Shown: piece by piece, positions 6,463-59,587 of the stretch
Position numbering within the stretch: the stretch's first letter is position 1
Layout of the letters: each line of letters begins with the position of its first letter
Source of the DNA: Ostrea edulis
Taxonomy: Eukaryota
Length of the DNA: 64,000 bases
NCBI RefSeq assembly: GCF_947568905.1
Contig: NC_079165.1
Span: forward strand, 65,906,001-65,970,000
Direction of reading: 5' to 3'
The notes under the pieces: generated by a model
Told to the model about the DNA's origin: nothing
What the model saw: only the letters and a program-made list of their open reading frames with translations
Databases searched by the model: none
Position numbers and translations under genes: made by a program

Positions 6463-23116
<16,654 letters not shown>

Positions 23117-43301: not shown

Positions 43302-46300
43302 TCAGTAAAATTTTGGAACTCTCTTTTTTAAAGGACACATGCCTGAAGGGATTCTTTCAAATAGTGTTTGACTGCCATCTGTAACAGAAAGTAAATTAAT
43401 CTTAAAGTGAATTAATCTGATAGGCTAAATTCAGATGAGCATGAAGTTAAATGTTTTTAAAATACAAAATTAAACACGAGATGGTAGTACAGTACAATCT
43501 TACACCACTGAGATCCATAGTACACGGGACAGATTCCCATCTGAGCTCTAGTCTCTGCAAATACAACGTTACCCTGAAATAAAAAGATTATAATTATATA
43601 TACATCTGTATGTATCTATGATTATAATTATATATACATCTGTACATATCTATGATTATAATTATATATACATCTGTACATATCTATGATTATAATTATA
43701 TATACATCTGTACACATCTATGATTATAATTATATATACATCTGTACACATCTATGATTATAATTATATATAAATCTGTACGTATCTATGATTATAATTA
43801 TATATACATCTGTACACATCTGTGATTATAATTATATATACATCTGTACACATCTGTGATTATAATTATACCCCCCGCAACAAGTTGTGGGGGGGGTATA
43901 CTGGAATCGGGTTGTCCGTCCGTCCGTCCGTCCGTCTGTAGACGCAATGGTTTCCGGACTCTAAAGCATTATCCTTTCCACCTACCGTCACCATATCATA
44001 CATATGGACTACCCATGGGATGAAGATGTTCCCTATCGATTTTGGGGTCAAAAGGTCAAAGGTCAAGCGCACTGGACATCGAAGTAGCAATATGGTTTCC
44101 GGGCTCTAAAGCGTTATCCTTTCCACCTACAGTCACCATATCATACATATGGACTACCCATGGGATGAAGATGTTCCCTATTGATTTTGGGGTCAAAAGG
44201 TCAAAGGTCAAGTGCACTGGACATCGAAGTAGCAATATGGTTTCCGGGCTCTAAAGCGTTATCCTTTCCACCTACAGTCACCATATCAAACATATGGACT
44301 ACCCATGGGATGAAGATGTTCCCTATCGATTTTGGGGTCAAAAGGTCAAAGGTCATCCGCACTGGACATCAAAGTAGCAATATGGTTTCCGGGCTCTAAA
44401 GCATTATCCTTTCCACCTACAGTCACCATATCATACATATGGACTACCCATGGGATGAAGATGTTCCCTATTGATTTTGGGGTCAAAAGGTCAAAGGTCA
44501 AGCGCACTGGACATCGAAGTAGCAATATGGTTTCCGGGCTCTAAAGCGTTATCCTTTCCACCTACAGTCACCATATCATACATATGGACTACCCATGGGA
44601 TGAAGATGTTCCCTATTGATTTTGGGGTCAAAAGGTCAAAGGTCAAGCGCACTGGACATCGAAGTAGCAATGTGGTTTCCGGGCTCTAAAGCGTTATCCT
44701 TTCCACCTACAGTCACCATATCACACATATGGACTACCCATGGGATGAAGATGTTCCCTATCGATTTTGGGGTCAAAAGGTCAAAGGTCACGCGCACTGG
44801 ACATCGAAGTAGCAATATGGTTCGGTTTGTCATGCCATTTGTTTTTTACACTCAGAAAAGAGGTAGTTTATACCTATTACCAACACCCTTTGGGAGATTG
44901 GGGTAAGCGGGGGGTATTCTTAGTGAGCATTGCTCACAGTACCTCTTGTTATATATACATGTGTACGTATCTATGATTATATTTGAATTGTGTACTGTAC
45001 AAAAATCCACCAAAAGTTAAACTGAAACAAGAAACGATCAAATTTTCTGAAATCTAGAAAAAAGGTGGAGGGTCATTGTATAAGTATTGTTGCTGTGATT
45101 AACGGAAGGATCTGAAATTCGAGAATATAATTAGTTGCACATATATTAAATTACAAGTACATTCATCAATATTTTGCTAATACAATCCTTTGCTAGCTAA
45201 ATATTTATATATTCTCATATGGGAACTCCTCTTTAGGTTACAAAGTCTTGCTTAGTATTGAAAGTTATTCGGTGCATAAAAAAAACCTTGCAACACTTTG
45301 ATACACGATTGAACTAACCTTAGTGACGGGTATCTTTATCTTGGACATAGGAAATACTAACTCTCCGCCAACTGTAGAATCGGTGAGCTAAGAAAACCAA
45401 CATAGGCGATGACTACATTTTTTTTTTATTTTGTATTTTATGCATCAAAATTGAGAGAGAAAAGAAATGGGCTTACAAATGAGATGAAATTTCCGACGAC
45501 TGGGCTTTGTTCCTACAAAAGAAATTACAGCTTTTTACGAAAGTCATGATCTGTATATTGCTGTGAACACCCATTACGCAATGTCATGTTTGTTGCAGAA
45601 TACTGTCCATTTCTAACATATTTCAGCTGAAGATTTTATACTTCATGAAATATATCAAAAAGGACAAAAACTGTACCTCGGGTTCGTAATCCATCATCTG
45701 CCCTTCTGTGCCGATATTAAAAGTCTAGACAGGTAGAAAAAAAGAATTCACGTGGTTAATCTCAACATATAAGGATAGAGATTATCGTAATCAAAGTCAT
45801 ACTGTAAGACTACTGTCTATAGACTAACCCAGTAATAACCATACTGTCAAATATACTGTCTATAGACTAACCCAGTAATAACCATACTGTCTATAGACTA
45901 ACCCAGTAATAACCACACTGTCAAATATACTGTCTATAGACTAACCCAGTAATAATCATATTGTCAAATATACTGTCTATAGAATAACCCAGTAATAACC
46001 ATCCTGTCTATAGACTAACCCAGTAATAACCATCCTGTCTATAGATTAACCCAGTAATAACCATCCTGTCAAATATACTGTCTATCTAGACTAACCCAGT
46101 AATAACCATACTGTCAAATATACTGTCTATAGAATAACCCAGTAATAACCATACTGTCAATTATACTGTCTATAGAATAACCCAGTAATAACCATACTGT
46201 CTATAGACTAACCCAGTCATAACCATACTGTCTATAGACTAACCCAGTAATAACCATACTGTCTATAGACTAACCCAGTAATAACCATACTGTCAAATAT

Positions 46301-49300
46301 ACTGTCTATAGACTAACCCAGTAATAATCATATTGTCAAATATACTGTCTATAGAATAACCCAGTAATAATCATACTGTCTATAGACTAACCCAGTAATA
46401 ACCATACTGTCAAATATACTGTCTATAGACTAACCCAATAACCATACTGTCTATAGACTAACCCAGTAATAACCATACTGTCTATAGACTAACCAAGTAA
46501 TAACCATACTGTCTATAGACTAACCAAGTAATAACCATACTGTCAAATATACTGTCTATAGACTAACCCAGTAATAATCATATTGTCAAATATACTGTCT
46601 ATAGAATAACCCAGTAATAACCATACTGTCTATAGACTAACCCAGTAATAACCATACTGTCTATAGACTAACCCAGTAATAACCATCCTGTCAAATATAC
46701 TGTCTATAGACTAACCCAGTAATAATCATATTGTCAAATATACTGTCTATAGAATAACCCAGTAATAACCATACTGTCAAATATAATGTCTATAGACTAA
46801 CCCAGTAATAAACATACTGTCTATAGACTAACCCAGTAATAACCATACTGTCTATAGAATAACCCAGTAATAACCATACTGTCAAATATACTGTCTATAG
46901 AATAACCCAGTAATAACCATACTGTCAAATATACTGTCTATAGACTAACAAAGTAAGCCATACTGTCAAACATACAAGATACTTACTCTGTATGAAAAGA
47001 ACACGCGCGGGAAATGACTGAGTTTCAGTTCTGAGAATTTGGCTTGTAAGTTTGGAATCCATTTCCAGTATGTCGTGTCGTACACTGCTGCACTGAAATG
47101 CAACGAGGGAACTCTCTTATAGAAAACAATGGACGCATAAAAATAACCCCTAAACGTCGATTGATTTTGTACACCCCTTGTATCAGGGACTGTAACACGA
47201 ACAGCACAGATCTTTTTTCATTCACCAATGGTTTAAAGTAAAGTTCAAACGAATAGACCATTAAAACCAACTAAACATTTTCTTTTTAACCAAAGACTGG
47301 GGCTTTGTTGCAATAATGAAAAACCGACAGCTGATTTATATATGAGTGTATTTTAAAGAAGCTGTGCAAATAAGAATCATTCAATATTGGAAATAAGTAA
47401 TTTTTCCTAAAGAGCCTACACACAGATATTATTATTATTTCAAATTTTTTTTTAATACTTTATATAGCATATATAGTGAGTTTACGTCACATTATACTAG
47501 AAAATACAGAGTTATCTGCCCTTTATGTAATATAAAACGTTGCGAGTTTTGCTAGGCAAAGAAGGGGCAAACAACAAACCACGATTGACTTTATGATCGT
47601 TGTAATTAGGAACAAATTATTAAAAACTTTTATTCGTAACCTTTTCAATGAACCACCCTTTGCATGATTCTAACATGCATTGTTTTTGTAATTAACCAAT
47701 CTGACTGAAGCCAAACCTAGCTAGCTCTATATCAAATTAGCGTAAACGAAGCTCTCGTTCTAGGGTCAGCGTATGTAACTAACGTGATCCAGGGTATCCC
47801 TGTAAACACGATGTCTTGCATTCTTATGAACATTTCAATAAACGAAGACATTGATATTTCTGTTTAGGAAGTGGGCGCAAAAGATGCGATTTATGCAGTA
47901 ATTTGGGTATATAGGTAACGTAATTTTTAATTTTTTTTTATCAATTTCTTCTATACTTTCCTGTATCCAGTTAGCATGTTTGGGATATTGGATAAATAAA
48001 AAGTTACCAAATTTTTGCTTCATGTAGATAGAATGTTCATCTAATTTTGGTCAGTCATCTGACTCAAGGTAAACTGATATTTTTTCTGTCATTTCTTTGT
48101 GTAAAATGCGTACAATAAATTTCAAAAAAGAAAATAAACTGAAGAATTTGCCCATTTCTGAAAAACAAAATATTCAGGTTAACTTGCATGTACAACCTGA
48201 TCAATATATTTAAATCCCATTTCACCATATGCATGATACGTGTCTCGAATATAGTACAGTCCGCGATATACCATTTAGAGCACTCACTGGCTGAACTCGT
48301 TGTATGGGCATTCTCCATCGGTGTTTGTATGTATGTTTACAATTTGTTTTATACTTTATTTGAATTGCGGATAATATACATTTGAATGTATTATTTTGAT
48401 TAAAATAATTTCATCATTAGTTGTGATGAAAAAATATGTAATAGAATATCTCGCTACACATTCGATTCCTGCAATTTCCTTACCATCATATCTGAATAAT
48501 TTATGATTTCTGCCCCCCCCCCCCCCCCCTCCCCCAACAAAAGAAAAAAGAGCGTAGAAATATTAGAAAACAGAAAAATGAATTTAGTGTTTGTAAACGG
48601 CAAATAACTCTGAATTATAAGTCAATGTTGAATTAATTTTGACGAGGGAGTGGTACATGAAACGTCATTACGTATTTCGTGATAAACATTAACATATATA
48701 TATAGTACGTAAGATCCAGAAAATAAAAATAGGCTTTTTTCTTTGTTTTTATAATCATTCTGCAGATCGATAAATAAAATTGCGTTTTTTCCAGTACTAA
48801 GACTAATTTTCTTTAAATTGCATAATTGTTAGCTGATACAACTTAATATTTTACTTGTGTTTCACTTGGGAGTATCCTCTCACTGTGGAGGAGTCCATCA
48901 GCTGCAACAGAAAAATAATCCTTAGAAGAGTTTTAAATGAAACACAACAAGAACATATCCGATTAAAATATAAAAAAAAGTGTAAAGGCGAAACAATGGT
49001 TCATCTAGACACTGAAAACTTTCTACAATACCACAACTCTACAATACCACAATATTAAATCCATAAAAATACCAAAAATGTATTTTAAAAAATAATATTA
49101 ATAAATGTACAGATAGATAAATATATAAAAAAAAAACAACCCAACAAAACATCCTCAATGAAAAACGAGGTGAATGACACACTTTAAGGAAGCAGGGTAG
49201 TCATTGAACAATACTGTCCATGTTTTGTAAACCAATGAAAATAGTAAAGAAAGCATATCTAATAATTATAAAAATATTTCTGAAAATGTGCAGAGCCTTA

Positions 49301-51712
49301 GATAATCTGAAGTCCCTATAATGTTGCTATTAATGTGTACGGTCTGCTACAAATTTAGAATAAAGTATATCCAAGAATTTCAACAACAACAAAAAAATAT
49401 GTAATCAACTCCGAGCCAGCCTCCTTAAGACAACTTCAATGATGTGAGGGTCTATGTCATGTATTGTTCATAATATTGAGCCACATTTCTAATGGACAGT
49501 GGAATTCCAGTATTTTTTATTGATACTGATAGTGACAACTATTTCAACATGCACAGTGCACAAACTTGCTTTAACGTTACAGTATACGTTTGGATTTGTT
49601 TTCTTGTTATATACAATGATCTTCTGCCGCTCACCTTCTTATATCCCATATAAGAAATGGCCATTGCAGTACCCTTGTCCAACATATCGTACAGAACAAT
49701 GATCTGGGGACGTCCGTTAACCACTTCCGCCCTCACGCCAGTCTTCATGTACGGAACAGGATTCCTCAACGGGAAGTACACGCACTTTAATCTAGATGAC
49801 TTTGAAATTACCTGAAAATAGTAGAATTCTGAATACTAACATGTATAGTACAGGCAGCAAAATGAAAATATGGTAAATTGATTTTTAAAAAAAGTGACCA
49901 TTTTCTGTTCTGATTTGCAGAGTTCCTCATAGAGCCGCCTGCTCTTCTTTGACGGTTTTCTCGGTTTCAGTTCAGAAGGATCAGCTGATGATTTGCTTGT
50001 CTGTAAATATTCCAAGTTTCTTTTGGCAGCAACGTTTTTGGGATCTACAATATTCAAAGTAGCAGCAACTGAATCACATTCATTTTTATGTCTAGTAATA
50101 TCCCTTCAATCAAAATCAGTTTGAAGCCAAAGTACATTTTCTTACCTAGTCGCAGCAAGTCAGCTAACGTCGTCTGTGCTTCTTTGACAAGACCAGCCTG
50201 TATTACAAGATTTTAACCTCTAATTTCACACGCTTCAAAGTAGATATACGTGAATTATGAAGGAAGTGCTAAAGTTTAGTAGATTACAAATTTTAGTATG
50301 CAGCTGAACCAACCTTGAAATATGCATTGGATAATAGGTGGAACACTGCCGATGACGATATTTGGTCATCTATATCGGATATACGATTTTCTTTCACCTC
50401 ATCCACGATGTATCTGAACCACTTAATAGCATAGTATGTGTCGTCCATTTCATATGCAGAGTTTGCTATGTCAAAGGCGTCCGACAGGGATAGCCTCTGT
50501 AGCGGCTTCACTCCCGTTACATCGCCACTCATTATCTGCTCAATGGTGAGGCTTTTGTAAAGCTGAAGCGCAGATATAGTACTTGCGATTGTGTTAAAGA
50601 CGTCCTTATTTGGAACATTTTCTTCTATGTTTTGTAATTTCACTTTTAAAGCTGAAAGAAATTGATAAATGTGAAAATGAAATGTGTATTATTTAGCTGT
50701 TTCGCAAAATGGTATTGACAAATGGTATATGTGACTTAACTGACTCAAATGTTTGGCCCCGGATTTCCAAACTTTACCGCTGTACTCTTTGACAGCTCGG
50801 TTATACTCACATTCTGTATATAGACCTTTAAGAAACCTTTCAACGAATATCACCACGGGATTCAAACAAGAATGTGTATTGTCTAAATCTGGCAGTGGCA
50901 ATGGTATGGCAGAAGGAAACTGAGTAATGAACGAACTGAAGGGCTGGCCAAGATAATAAAAATTAGCTATGAAAAAACAAAACAGAAACGCTGGACCAGC
51001 TAATTTTCAAAAAGGCTCTATAGTAGCACTATAGGTTGGTAATCAGAAGGCAAGCGAGTACCTGGTTACTTAGAAACCACATAGAAGGACGGTAGGAAAA
51101 AGCGGAAGTACGGGACCAAACAGCAGGAGACTCAAATGAAAGATGCCGATGGTGGCATCATGTCACTGAGAGATTAAGGTGCTATGTAAGACCCAATTCG
51201 AAAGTTATTCAACAGAGAAACCAACTAGGTATTTATATCAAATGTTCTTAGAGTTTAAAAAAAATGTTACCTTTGACACAAGTATCACTATTTAGTATAA
51301 GTTGTAAAATTTCCCGCCATTCGTGGTATAGTCGTCTGGTGAGGTGGAACTGGTTGATGGGGTGGCTGATATAACCTACTACATTCCTGCCGATATCCTT
51401 GTGAATAGTTTTGACATTTTCAAGCATCCTGCAAAGAATGTATAAAAGAAAAGGAACAACATGATGAGGATAAATGGTGGTTCATCCCTCACACATCGCT
51501 GTACTTATGATCAATACTGACCCAGTTATATTGGCAAACTTGTGAACATCTTCCTCATGATTTCTTAACTCCTGTTTAACGATCAAATCCGAGAGAGTGA
51601 GAAGTTCCTCTTCCATTCGGAAAAACTTTTCAAAATTCATAACTGTAGTTAGATCTTGGGAAGTTCCAAAGGAAAAGCACGCGACCAAGAAAACTGTAAC
51701 CACTCGAGCCAT
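43302..51712 (-). CDS. P4HA: Prolyl 4-hydroxylase alpha-subunit homologue, 504 aa, catalytic residues lost (probable pseudoenzyme)
   Basis: 13 exons: 51712-51522, 51428-51271, 50651-50314, 50197-50146, 50044-49899, 49811-49635, 48901-48855, 47092-46987, 45724-45677, 45512-45477, 45387-45319, 43573-43504, 43378-43302. 1515 nt, all GT-AG, no internal stop. Signal peptide, HPINQFHLTRRLYHEW, TPR (DAFDIANSAYEMDDTYYAIKWF), LYEELCK, DSTVGGELVFP, CPVYYGSQW. Confidence 0.88.
43586..43867. repeat. 34-bp minisatellite (8 units plus one interrupted unit completed after 44950)
   Basis: Unit GATTATAATTATATATACATCTGTACACATCTAT, period 34. Confidence 0.95.
43867..44950 (+). mobile_element. Helentron/pearl-type element with a 6 x 145-bp satellite core
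   Basis: 5' ATACCCCCCGC hairpin, (GTCC)n, units at 43951/44096/44241/44386/44531/44676, 3' GCGGGGGGTAT subTIR, GTGAGCATTGCTCAC stem-loop, CTTGTT end. Confidence 0.9.
45800..46972. repeat. Minisatellite of mixed 31-bp and 43-bp units
   Basis: Core ATACTGTCTATAGACTAACCCAGTAATAACC with an optional 12-bp ATACTGTCAAAT module. Confidence 0.95.
50780..51180 (+). mobile_element. Heavily deleted RTE-like LINE fragment in a P4HA-like intron
   Basis: Relics YIDL*ETF (FIDLEKAF-like), TGFKQECVLS (TGVRQGCVLS-like), WYG...LAKII and EGKR...T*KDG. Confidence 0.45.
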
Positions 51713-55432: not shown

Positions 55433-57802
55433 ATGGGTCCAGCGAGTTTATTTCTGATTGTTCAACTTTTTGTACCTGTTTTGTGTGTTTACAAAGGTAT
55501 TGTCTCAAATATTGTCTATTCATTCCAATGTGTTGATGATTTCTTACAAAATTATGCGTTTCGTGAATACTAGTAATATAAAAATCTTGAGATAATTTAC
55601 TTAAACTTATAGAGATCATTTTATGTTTTATAGATGTGGTTTTCGTCCTAGACAAATCTTCCTCCTTGACGATTACAGACTTCGACGATTCCTTGCACTT
55701 TACACATGACATCATACAGTCGTTAGAAATTGGAACGTCAGATGTACTCGCGTCGTTAGTGACGTTTTCGACTGAACAGACAGAAGTGTTCGATTTAAAG
55801 GATTACACCGAAAAATCGGAAATGTTACAAGCGGTTGACAACCTTCTGGGGACGAACACTTCTGGGGATGGTGATGTCACAGGTTCTCTTCAATTTGTGT
55901 GGGATAATACCTTTCAAACCAGTGGCAGAACTAGTCCAGACCGAGCGGTCATTCTGGTGACCAGCAGTATTTCAAACGACACCGCGGAATCAATCGCATT
56001 TGCCGACCGCATTCGCACGGATTTCAATGCCGACATTTTCACCATTGGTGTTGGTCCTACAGTGTACGCACAGAATGCCGAGCTGAGAGGGGTGGCCAAT
56101 GACCCCGACGCCAATTTCACCGTCTTTGTAGAAAGCTTCAGTGATCTCTGGTGTGCTGTTCCCGACATTGTGGCAAAATTAGGTAATCCGAACATAGTTT
56201 ATCTTAACGAAAATCGTCTTTTAGAGTAGGTCCTAAAATACATTTGATAATTATTCTCAATAACGAAATTCACTTGCTTATCCTATTCTCTGTGTGTTCT
56301 CTTCAGATCCGTCGTCATCACTGACGCCATACTCTAATTGTACACTGAAGTCACTACCACCTATAATAACACATACAACAGAAAACGTGCCATCTACAAC
56401 ATCTACACAACCCACAACATCTACACAACCCACAACATCTACACAACCCACAACATCTACACAACCCACAACATCTACACCTATAACAACATCTACACAA
56501 CCCACAACATCTACACAACCCACAACATCTACACAACCCACAACATCTACACAACCCACAACATCTACACCTATAACAACATCTACACAACCCACAACAT
56601 CTACACAACCCACAACATCTACACAACCCACAACATCTACACCTATAACAACATCTACACAGCCCACAACATCTACACAACCCACAACATCTACACAACC
56701 CACAACAACTACACAACCCACAACATCTACACCTATAACAACATCTCCATCAACAACATCTCAATCTACAGCGTCAACAACTACACAATCATCCACAACT
56801 CAATCTACAACACTTACAATTCCATCTACCACATCAACACCAACTATGACATCATTACCACATACATTAAGTAGTACTTCACCTCTATCATCAGAAGAAA
56901 TATCTACAACACCATCAATGTCGCCGAAAACAACAACAGTCCAATCCCCAACAATAACACAACAGACGCTATCGGTTTTGGGACCAGCCCAGTCCGCCGC
57001 CTCTACCAGTGGTTCAAGTAATTTTTTTCTTGAAACTGAGTTGAACGTTTTTCTTTTTCTTTTATGGCTTCAGTTGTTTGGTAGTTAGAGGGGACATTCC
57101 AAATGCATGACAAAGAAGCATGAATCGGATACTTTTTATATCCATAACATTTAGATTTATAATTATTTTTTTGGTCCCGTGAGGATCCTGGTTAGAATAG
57201 GTCCTCAGTACCCCCCTTGATTGTCGTAAGAGGCGACTAAATGGAGCGGTCCTTTGAATGAGACCGCAAAAAAACCGAGGCCCCGTGTCACAGCAGGTGT
57301 GGCACGATAAAGATCCCTCCCTGCCGTAAGCGCTAGGGCACAGGCCTAAATTTTGCAGCCCTTAACCGGCAGTGGTGACGTCTCCGTATGAGTGAAAAGT
57401 TCTCCAATAAACAATATGTTTTTTAGCTAATATTTGAGCAGCTGTTATCGTTGATATGTGTTCTTTAGAGTATCTCTTCTTTTGATTTGTACATACAAGA
57501 TTGTTCTATACCCTAGGTACCAGTATTGTTGCCGGTGTCGTTATAGGCATTCTAGCCGCCGCTGCTGCCGTATTTGCATTATTAGCCATCTGGAGACGAA
57601 GGTAAAATTATGTACCTATCAATCATTCATATAACAATATATATACATTTTACTTTCTGGACCATTTCAATCATATTTCATTATTTTTAGACGTTCTGCA
57701 AACGAAGACGAGCTCCCCATCCTAACTCTCGTAAGACAGTACAGGTCGGCTCCAATGGGACCCTCTAAATCGACCTTCTCGCACCAACATCACCGCTTTT
57801 AG
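55433..57802 (+). CDS. Type I membrane protein: signal peptide - vWA domain - Thr-rich mucin stalk - TM - short tail (506 aa)
   Basis: Exons 55433-55496, 55634-56182, 56307-57017, 57517-57601, 57691-57802; phases consistent, 1521 nt. DVVFVLDKSSS, FTIGVG, TM IVAGVVIGILAAAAAVFALLAIWRRR. Confidence 0.92.
56396..56737 (+). repeat. Coding 18-bp tandem repeat (19 units, TTSTQP/TTSTPI)
   Basis: ACAACATCTACACAACCC units within the stalk exon. Confidence 0.95.
57174..57415 (+). mobile_element. 5'-truncated SINE (Meta-type central domain)
   Basis: TTGTCGTAAGAGGCGACTAA resembles the MetaSINE core as remembered; GC-rich body and short A-rich end. Confidence 0.6.
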
Positions 57803-58324: not shown

Positions 58325-59587
58325 CGAGAGCTGTTCGATATGTAATGTGCATTGTACGATATCTCAAAAGCATTCGACTCAAATTGTGAAATGAACATTA
58401 CGTCCCTTCAAAGTATTCTCCGCGGTTTGAAATACATAATTTCAATCTCTGAATCCATTTCTGAAAAGCGTCACGGTACGCTGATTTAGGTAAACCTCTG
58501 TGGCACTGACAGATGGCTGAGCCAAGGGCTTGTCGGGGCTTGTAACTACGACCAGATAAGAACTTTTGAAGTTTTTGCAAAAGGAAAAAGTCGCATGGGG
58601 ATAGATCTGGAGAGTACGGTGGGTGTGGCAAGACGGTAGCCTCTTCCGACTTCAAAATTTGCTTCACAAGCTCAGCTGTATGTGATGGAGCATTATCATG
58701 AAGTAGACAAACATGCCTAAATTCTGACACAGGGCGTCGCTTATGATAATGAGCTTTTTTAGTATAACATCTCGGTAATACAGTCCTGTAACACTTCTGC
58801 CCTTCGGCACCGGAATTTGTACGGCTATACCATCACATGAGAAGAATATGCAATGAAGAACCTTCTTTGTGCTGATGGTTCTTTTGGCAACTACAGGCCT
58901 TCTACCGTGTTTAGTTAGCCATATTTTGTTTCCAATTTTTCTTACTGGTTCGATATAGTGAACCCATGTTTCATCACCAGTAACAATGTTTGCAAATTGT
59001 CTTTGATTGAATTTGGGAAACATTTTGAGCAATTGCTTAGCGGTTTGTACTTTCAAAATCCGCTTTAAAATGAAATGCACCCGCGATAGCGATATGCCAA
59101 CAGCTTTGGCAATATCACTAATCGTATACTAGTATTTGCCATTACTTTCAATTATTTTCCTGACTTTTGAGACATTTGCCTTGCCTGTTACAGTCCCAGG
59201 TCGGCCAAATTTTGCTGCATCTTTCACGGACTCTGTGCCAGTCAGAAATTTCTTTCTCCACCTACGGATAACTTGTCAGACCCATAAACTTCCCCCAGTT
59301 CAGTAAAGATCTGCATTACCGAATGACCGAGTTTTGTTTCGAAGTTTTATATAAACTCTAATTTGTTCAATATTCTCAACCCGTTTCCCAACCATTTTTA
59401 CAACAGTGATCAACGACTGGCTCTATTGAAATGACTATAAGTTTAAAACTATTTGGAGCTGAAGGCTCGTGTTTATACCGTTGGAAAGTTATTAAATAGA
59501 GCTATTTCCGAGTATCATCATCCATGAAATCGTGCAAAGCGTTATCGCGCTGTAGTACAGTACACATTACATATCGAACAGCCCTAG
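58325..59587 (-). mobile_element. Near full-length mariner transposon (DD34D), decayed
   Basis: TA|CGAGAGCTGTTCGATATGTAATGTG ... CACATTACATATCGAACAGCCCTAG|TA; 1263 bp. Confidence 0.95.
58398..59405 (-). pseudogene. Frameshifted mariner transposase
   Basis: IVTGDETWVHY, LLHDNAPSH, HPPYSPDLSPCDFF, with 34 residues between the 2nd and 3rd Asp; split over several frames. Confidence 0.92.

Follow-up and report, generated by a model that had tools for sequence, protein, structure and literature searches.

Non-enzymatic paralogues of collagen prolyl hydroxylases are known from the leprecan (prolyl 3-hydroxylase) family, where CRTAP and P3H4/SC65 are proteins of the endoplasmic reticulum (ER) that have been maintained and work in complex with the collagen-modifying machinery. 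Collagen prolyl 4-hydroxylases (C-P4Hs) are among the best studied 2-oxoglutarate (2OG) oxygenases, and their iron-binding motif has been termed "fully conserved": the Fe ligands of C-P4H-II are His430, Asp432 and His501, and its 2OG contacts are Tyr421, Thr467 and Lys511 (PMC9676403). In the same enzyme, Cys294 and Cys504 form an intrachain disulfide, while Cys311 and Cys529 attach the alpha subunit through disulfides to the CGHC motifs of protein disulfide isomerase (PDI; PMC9676403). Alpha subunits can also be mixed within one tetramer, as in the [DPY-18][PHY-2][PDI-2]2 complex of Caenorhabditis elegans (PMC3548485). Here we analyse a P4HA-like gene on the minus strand of a 64,000-nucleotide stretch of the Ostrea edulis genome (assembly GCF_947568905.1, contig NC_079165.1, positions 65,906,001 to 65,970,000; hereafter the window). 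The gene very probably belongs to an old family, present in all bivalve orders sampled, of catalytically dead C-P4H alpha-subunit paralogues that have kept the three-domain layout of the enzyme.

Results

Catalytic positions were assigned from two alignments, one of a family profile against the human chain 7ZSC and one built in MAFFT with two canonical nematode P4HA copies, and both agree on these positions. The canonical ANYG reads TFNIG in the oyster protein, which puts isoleucine at the place of the 2OG-binding tyrosine. The strand that carries His-x-Asp (HxD) and the segment after it have given way to a variable stretch of 10-16 residues, and residues 420-423 have a predicted local distance difference test score (pLDDT) below 50 in the AlphaFold2 (AF2) model. 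Strand beta-II of the dead catalytic (CAT) domain is cut to two residues. After the HxD position, about 24 alignment columns of the nematode copies have no counterpart in the oyster protein, against about 12 for 7ZSC, and the loop that leads to the distal histidine is shorter by 9 residues. Asparagine stands at the position of the 2OG-contacting threonine in oysters. Further downstream, RHAACPV has become QMGICPV, with methionine for the distal histidine (V, L, A or W in relatives), and GxKW has become GSQW, with glutamine for the 2OG-binding lysine (E or L in relatives). The catalytic positions are replaced in all ten of the ten full-length family members.

The CAT-domain alignment of the family holds no conserved histidine column, the beta-helix core of 76-81 residues contains none at all in the oyster and mussel proteins, and in O. 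edulis no histidine follows residue 396. These absences make a 2-His-1-carboxylate site impossible and a "migrated" site very unlikely. With the HxD strand, the distal histidine and the 2OG-binding lysine and tyrosine all replaced, and with no conserved histidine left, the oyster protein is predicted to be unable to bind Fe(II) or 2OG.

A preliminary description of this gene, made from the DNA letters, had quoted TFNIGTEGQMMDYEP, QMGICPVYYGSQW and GGELVFP from its product, and all three motifs are found in our translation. Its reading of the distal site (His to Met, Lys to Gln), of a loop about nine residues shorter before the second histidine and of a retained CP motif is borne out by both alignments, the last in the form QMGICPV. 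Its proposal that the HxD pair had changed to tyrosine and proline stands in part: His-x-Asp is absent in both alignments, but the exact pairing is ill-defined, the segment being a shortened variable loop. This is immaterial to the conclusion, because no histidine lies beyond residue 396. Catalytic exons that could restore HxD, His or Lys were sought by tblastn with two canonical CAT domains and by six-frame motif scans; no alternative catalytic exon was found in the 64-kb window, where matches were of the chance kind (E of at least 0.5).

Despite these losses, the architecture of an alpha subunit is recognizable. The whole protein matches the P4Ha_N dimerisation domain (PF08336, E 4.5e-16, 59 bits versus a cut-off of 25.3), which is its strongest Pfam match, and the tetratricopeptide repeat (TPR) domain TPR_P4H (PF23558, E 8.9e-11, 42 bits versus a cut-off of 27). 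Along its full length it is collinear with a canonical nematode P4HA subunit (20% identity, E 1e-21). The Pfam family 2OG-FeII_Oxy_3 gave no match to the oyster protein even at E 10, and a single-sequence search of the PDB with phmmer matched the N-terminal and peptide-binding domains of human P4HA1 only (2YQ8 and 1TJC among the matches). A profile made from ten family members, however, identified the C-terminal 230 residues as a CAT domain of the P4H type, matching the CAT domain of human P4HA2 (C-P4H-II; 7ZSC_A, E 5.1e-14) and also the P4H of Bacillus anthracis (E 3.8e-9).

Predicted structures, on which the structural case for the CAT fold is built throughout, gave corresponding results. 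The AF2 model has a mean pLDDT of 80 and a predicted TM-score (pTM) of 0.79. When it was searched with Foldseek, its first half (N-terminal and peptide-binding domains) retrieved 4BT8/4BT9 and its second half (CAT) retrieved 7ZSC (E 7e-9, target TM-score about 0.62) and other P4Hs; a model from the ESM Atlas matched chordate P4HA clusters with a TM-score of 0.78 across 214 residues. That is, the C-terminal domain is predicted, from profile and models alike, to retain the P4H-type double-stranded beta-helix. The retention of the N-terminal dimerisation domain, as described earlier, is supported by a Pfam score above threshold and by the Foldseek matches, and the N-terminus resembles a signal peptide as judged from its residues.

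We gathered relatives by exhaustive HMMER search with exon 3 as query, by word-based search and by cluster look-ups. Full-length relatives with the same losses occur in the oysters Magallana gigas, M. angulata, Crassostrea virginica, Saccostrea cucullata and S. echinata, and among other bivalves in five Mytilus species, Pinctada, Mizuhopecten, Ruditapes, Sinanodonta and the protobranch Solemya velum. The dead family is thus present in Ostreida, Mytilida, Pteriida, Pectinida, Venerida and Unionida as well as in the protobranch Solemya. In a maximum-likelihood tree it stands apart from canonical P4HA and broadly tracks bivalve phylogeny. Since the sampled lineages include a protobranch, this distribution suggests that the losses date from early bivalve history.

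Gene structure is equally stable. Mapping of the proteins to their genomic loci gave 13 exons in each of four oyster genera, with equal exon lengths save for an exon 1 that is 3 nt shorter in Saccostrea; Mytilus and Solemya have the same exon pattern (158/338-341/52/.../69/70). Among oyster pairs with estimable synonymous divergence (dS), and for regions of at least 200 codons, the approximate ratio of nonsynonymous to synonymous substitution (dN/dS, or omega) was 0.04-0.12, with bootstrap upper bounds of at most 0.145; two or three Saccostrea comparisons were too saturated. The values were alike for the whole gene, its N-terminal half and the dead CAT domain. Purifying selection on the dead domain therefore equals that on the rest of the protein.

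Evidence of transcription comes from other family members. An intronless Mytilus sequencing contig of 1757 nt encodes the dead protein collinearly and without gaps relative to a genomic gene of 13 exons and 20 kb, which indicates that the family is transcribed and spliced as modelled. A second intronless transcript contig encodes a family member that groups with Ruditapes in the tree.

The peptide-binding groove has been remodelled. Ten residues of the human peptide-substrate-binding (PSB) domain, PSB-I, shape the P1, P5 and P8 pockets (Y158, D192, Y193, Y196, Y199, R223, N227, Y230, F231 and Y233), and mutation of Tyr193, Tyr196 or Tyr230 in the human enzyme raises the Km for (PPG)10 (PMC12433258). 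In a gap-free alignment whose register is set by the TPR, O. edulis has Y, H, L, N, F, A, N, Y, L and T at the ten positions. Three are unchanged (Tyr158, Asn227 and Tyr230) and seven have changed, two of them conservatively (Y199 to F, F231 to L). Asp192, Tyr193, Tyr196 and Arg223 are replaced in all family members, the P8 pocket and its Asp-Arg salt bridge are lost family-wide, and an Arg-Asn pair at positions 226-227 forms a near-invariant motif specific to the family. Given the changed residues and the raised Km of the human mutants, binding of the classical (Pro-Pro-Gly)n substrate by the oyster TPR domain appears unlikely. The preliminary description had listed the TPR peptide-binding domain as kept; this holds for the fold (PF23558, and phmmer matches to 2YQ8/1TJC) but not for the groove.

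The four cysteines of the CAT domain are kept. C289, C305, C471 and C494 of the oyster protein align with Cys294, Cys311, Cys504 and Cys529 of C-P4H-II, the residues of the intrachain disulfide and of the two links to PDI. C289, C471 and C494 are invariant in the family, and C305 is present in nine of ten members. No KDEL/HDEL signal and no transmembrane segment were found in the oyster protein.

Rebuilt from raw sequence, the O. edulis gene consists of 13 exons that run from 51712 to 43302 on the minus strand, and all of its introns are of the GT...AG type (Table 1). The coding sequence comprises 1515 nt, that is, 504 codons and a stop, with the ATG at 51712 and the stop codon at 43304-43302. 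Its spliced translation is identical at all residues to the NCBI protein XP_056012906.1 of O. edulis. The 13-exon, 504-residue frame given earlier was thus reproduced to the exact coordinate. There is no second copy of the gene in the 64-kb window.

Table 1. Exons of the dead P4HA-like gene of Ostrea edulis, in transcript order; positions are those of the window.
Exon	Content	Position	Strand	Remarks
1	Start codon, predicted signal peptide (MARVVTVFLVACFSFGTS/QD), start of dimerisation domain	51522..51712	-	Donor GTCAGT; signal peptide predicted from sequence only
2	P4Ha_N domain	51271..51428	-	Pfam PF08336, E 5e-10 with the exon alone; splice sites
3	End of P4Ha_N and first part of TPR peptide-substrate-binding (PSB) domain	50314..50651	-	PF23558 TPR_P4H, E 3.8e-5
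4	PSB domain, TPR helix	50146..50197	-	52-nt exon kept in oysters, Mytilus and Solemya
5	End of PSB domain (invariant RN motif), linker, Cys289 helix (RLYEELC)	49899..50044	-	
6		49635..49811	-	
7	CAT-domain helix	48855..48901	-	47-nt exon kept in all four oysters and Mytilus
8	CAT domain, ending at start of strand beta-I	46987..47092	-	
9	TFNIGTEGQMMDYEPE; beta-I remnant (NIG for NYG) and short variable loop replacing the His-x-Asp strand	45677..45724	-	
10	EQSPVVGNFISF (beta-III); Asn at the 2OG-contacting Thr position	45477..45512	-	
11	LTDSTVGGELVFPMSKIKIPVTK; conserved GGxxVFP strand	45319..45387	-	
12	GNVVFAETRAQMGICPVYYGSQW; 9-residue deletion, Met468 (distal-His position), Cys471, Gln478 (2OG-Lys position)	43504..43573	-	
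13	C-terminal tail, Cys494 (SGMCPLKK), stop; no KDEL	43302..43378	-	

Two further candidates for coding sequence were rejected. The segment 50975-50790 keeps an open frame and is flanked by a good acceptor and a good donor; yet exon 2 joins exon 3 directly in frame, the junction of the two matches canonical sequence, and the NCBI model and all orthologues omit the segment. A small open reading frame (ORF) near 48310, between exons 7 and 8, has no homology, and the frame is complete without it.

At 8.4 kb the O. edulis gene is longer than its counterparts in other oysters (3.2-5.7 kb), and the greater length accompanies repeat-rich introns. Intron 11 contains two adjacent tandem arrays (43586-44822), one of 34 bp x 8.4 (43586-43870) and one of 145 bp x 6 (43947-44822), each with 96% matches; a hairpin-like motif of a C-run and a G-run lies between them at about 43870-43900. 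Read on the gene strand, the 145-bp unit gives the translation ...YDMVTVGGKDNALEPGNHIATSM, which weakly resembles the canonical P4HA segment after HxD, FDMSTRGESDPYEEGTGNRIATVL (E about 3). We considered this repeat as a hidden catalytic exon and attribute the likeness to chance: it is not significant, its intron (downstream of the GGELVFP exon) is the wrong one, and the repeat belongs to a recent, 96%-identical tandem array. Intron 8 is nearly filled, from 45811 to 46975, by about 31 copies of a degenerate 43/31-bp satellite (TACTGTCTATAGACTAACCCAGTAATAACC...), and intron 7 carries a homopolymer of about 20 C with A-rich flanks at 48515-48535.

Elsewhere in the window, the plus-strand ORF 55636-56226 encodes a strong von Willebrand factor A (VWA) domain (PF00092, E 6.7e-27). 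In M. gigas, C. virginica and Saccostrea the orthologues likewise have VWA-domain genes upstream, in divergent orientation, indicating conserved synteny. The minus-strand ORF 58667-59080 weakly matches the DDE domain Transposase_1 of the mariner type (E 3e-4) and is probably a transposon remnant.

Two observations concern sequences outside bivalves. The gastropod-derived gene model LOC112561121 of Pomacea canaliculata (XP_025089155.1, 442 aa) has the N-terminal domains of the family, and the NCBI model ends early and is seemingly truncated. Exons past its annotated end encode MNDVEMGGDIVFPSANARVHPS and QGTVLFYFPSFKKYHAVCPVAYGTEW (L008:17128-17205, 17813-17890; GCA_003073045.1 CM009758.1), which correspond to the last strands of the family. 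Within these downstream exons are encoded GGDIVFP and YHAVCPVAYGTEW, the latter with a histidine three residues before the CPV cysteine and a glutamate for the 2OG-binding lysine. To judge from these exons, the dead family may reach beyond bivalves, with the Pomacea gene representing an intermediate state, or the family may be older than bivalves. In Trichinella papuae, the 1107-aa "P4HA2, partial" (KRZ67941.1) merges two canonical P4HA genes that lie in tandem into a single model; a GNRIAT segment is duplicated in each half, as if two alternative exons had both been included.

Discussion

Enzyme homology and fold, an absent catalytic motif and purifying selection characterize the oyster protein, on the evidence of sequence, as a pseudoenzyme. 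The preliminary description had taken the gene for a maintained, non-catalytic P4HA-like gene, and all checks that could be run agree with it: orthologues and wider bivalves share the losses, dN/dS is low with the dead domain included, structure prediction returns the P4H fold, and the exon scan was empty.

How such a protein works is a separate question. The chaperone, PDI-scaffold and dominant-negative roles named in the preliminary description were inferred, and the only direct hint at function is the conservation of the PDI-linking-type cysteines. Building on these, we propose a mechanism to which we would give roughly even chances. The signal peptide would be cleaved and the protein kept in the ER by docking on PDI, as canonical alpha subunits are; so docked, it would serve as a non-catalytic, alpha-like subunit, either in a homodimeric PDI complex or joined to a catalytic alpha subunit by way of its dimerisation domain. 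The client bound or presented by the remodelled TPR groove would then differ from the classical (Pro-Pro-Gly)n substrate. Taken together, a dead P4HA family whose members serve as PDI-bound alpha-like subunits is, in our judgement, the best explanation overall and a reasonably probable one.

Several points weigh against this explanation. The dS values are saturated (>1) and the omega values accordingly approximate, though far below 1. For comparison with canonical subunits, nematode copies and the human 7ZSC chain served in place of an oyster P4HA. Expression support for the O. edulis gene itself consists of the NCBI model and the mussel transcripts only. As to docking, the cysteine case is an argument from alignment, the scallop member is without C305, and both the alignment and the pLDDT are poor over the region expected to carry the contact with the b' pocket of PDI (Ile324 in C-P4H-II).

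Could the gene be a decaying pseudogene, or the model an artefact that misses other exons with the catalytic residues? The catalytic exons are tiny (36-70 nt) and the introns are filled with satellites, points that would favour such a reading. The uninterrupted frame with GT-AG introns throughout, the exon structure shared by four oyster genera (apart from the 3-nt difference in exon 1 of Saccostrea) and by Mytilus and Solemya, the low dN/dS, the mussel transcript collinear with the model and the empty scans of the window speak against both, and we regard the idea as effectively refuted. It is just as improbable that the protein is still an enzyme, performing hydroxylation or another reaction through relocated or non-canonical ligands. 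Catalytic residues have migrated in some predicted pseudoenzymes (PMC10211241), and the family has an invariant Glu463 and a nearly invariant Asp375. Against this stand the missing conserved CAT histidine (with none at all in the oyster and mussel beta-helix core), changes at all three 2OG-contacting positions, a beta-II strand of two residues and the shortening of both the post-HxD segment and the loop before the distal histidine.

Less easily set aside, though still unlikely, is a secreted protein that binds proline-rich or collagen-like partners independently of PDI, the dead P4HA scaffold having found a new use beyond the ER, such as in the extracellular, shell or byssus matrix. Such a role would fit a signal peptide in a protein that lacks KDEL/HDEL and a transmembrane segment, a remodelled groove whose invariant, family-specific Arg-Asn motif suggests a new ligand, and a family found mainly in bivalves, the makers of unusual collagenous materials. 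Canonical alpha subunits, however, are KDEL-less too, and it is PDI that retains them. The four CAT cysteines are all conserved, and the two of the PDI-linking type are hard to explain without PDI (PMC9676403). Moreover, family accessions were not found in the searched literature, shell- and byssus-proteome papers included. A regulatory role has a comparably low probability in its specific form, in which the dead subunit would use its conserved N-terminal coiled coil to heterodimerise with a catalytic alpha subunit and the resulting asymmetric PDI complex would tune, up or down, how far particular collagens are hydroxylated. Among the Pfam matches the dimerisation domain is the best conserved, the mixed tetramers of C. 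elegans are a documented example (PMC3548485), and dead paralogues that regulate active partners are a common kind of pseudoenzyme (PMC5201418); yet the coiled coil is only about 20% identical to that of canonical subunits, which makes homodimerisation at least as likely. Such a partner falls within the proposed role of a PDI-bound non-catalytic subunit and is no alternative to it.

Going further, one might suppose that bivalves, and perhaps molluscs at large, have possessed since at least the last common ancestor of the sampled bivalves a dead alpha subunit that docks on PDI and pairs either with itself or with a catalytic alpha subunit. The resulting complex, asymmetric or wholly non-catalytic, would select, hold or shield particular proline-rich clients such as byssal or shell-matrix collagens. 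We offer this wider picture as speculation and consider it somewhat unlikely in its entirety. If true, it would add a regulatory layer to the making of bivalve collagenous materials, a possibility that would amount to accessory-subunit control of collagen hydroxylation, comparable to that by CRTAP in prolyl 3-hydroxylation and so far undescribed for P4H. In any case, a dead paralogue of so well studied an enzyme is a natural separation-of-function variant, which can be used to probe the non-catalytic roles of alpha subunits: PDI docking, dimerisation and client binding. Our literature search found no description of a dead C-P4H alpha subunit or of these accessions. Databases label the family members as P4HA1/2/3-like enzymes; gene-family counts and expression studies in oyster, mussel and scallop therefore count them as enzymes.

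Compared with vertebrate P4HA1/2/3 and nematode DPY-18/PHY-2, the oyster protein has the same succession of P4Ha_N, TPR_P4H and a predicted C-terminal P4H-type double-stranded beta-helix. It resembles canonical alpha subunits in its predicted signal peptide, the lack of KDEL, the four CAT cysteines and the GGxxVFP, CPV and W motifs, and differs from them in lacking the His-x-Asp...His triad, the 2OG-binding lysine and tyrosine and, in oysters, the threonine. A precedent for PDI as the structural, solubilising subunit of a non-hydroxylase is the alpha subunit of microsomal triglyceride transfer protein (MTP), whose complex has been compared with that of C-P4H (PMC9676403); MTP is unrelated to the oyster protein in fold and function, and the MTP-PDI structure is without an intersubunit disulfide. 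Pseudoenzymes that regulate active partners, such as the AdoMetDC prozyme of T. brucei, share with the oyster protein homology to an enzyme, loss of the catalytic motif and purifying selection. Closest in concept are CRTAP and P3H4/SC65, likewise non-enzymatic paralogues of a collagen prolyl hydroxylase, and the P3H1/CRTAP/PPIB structures 8K0E/8K0F were among the Foldseek fold matches. CRTAP and SC65, however, belong to a different family and lack the dioxygenase domain altogether, whereas in the oyster protein the dioxygenase fold appears to have been kept, constrained and disarmed.

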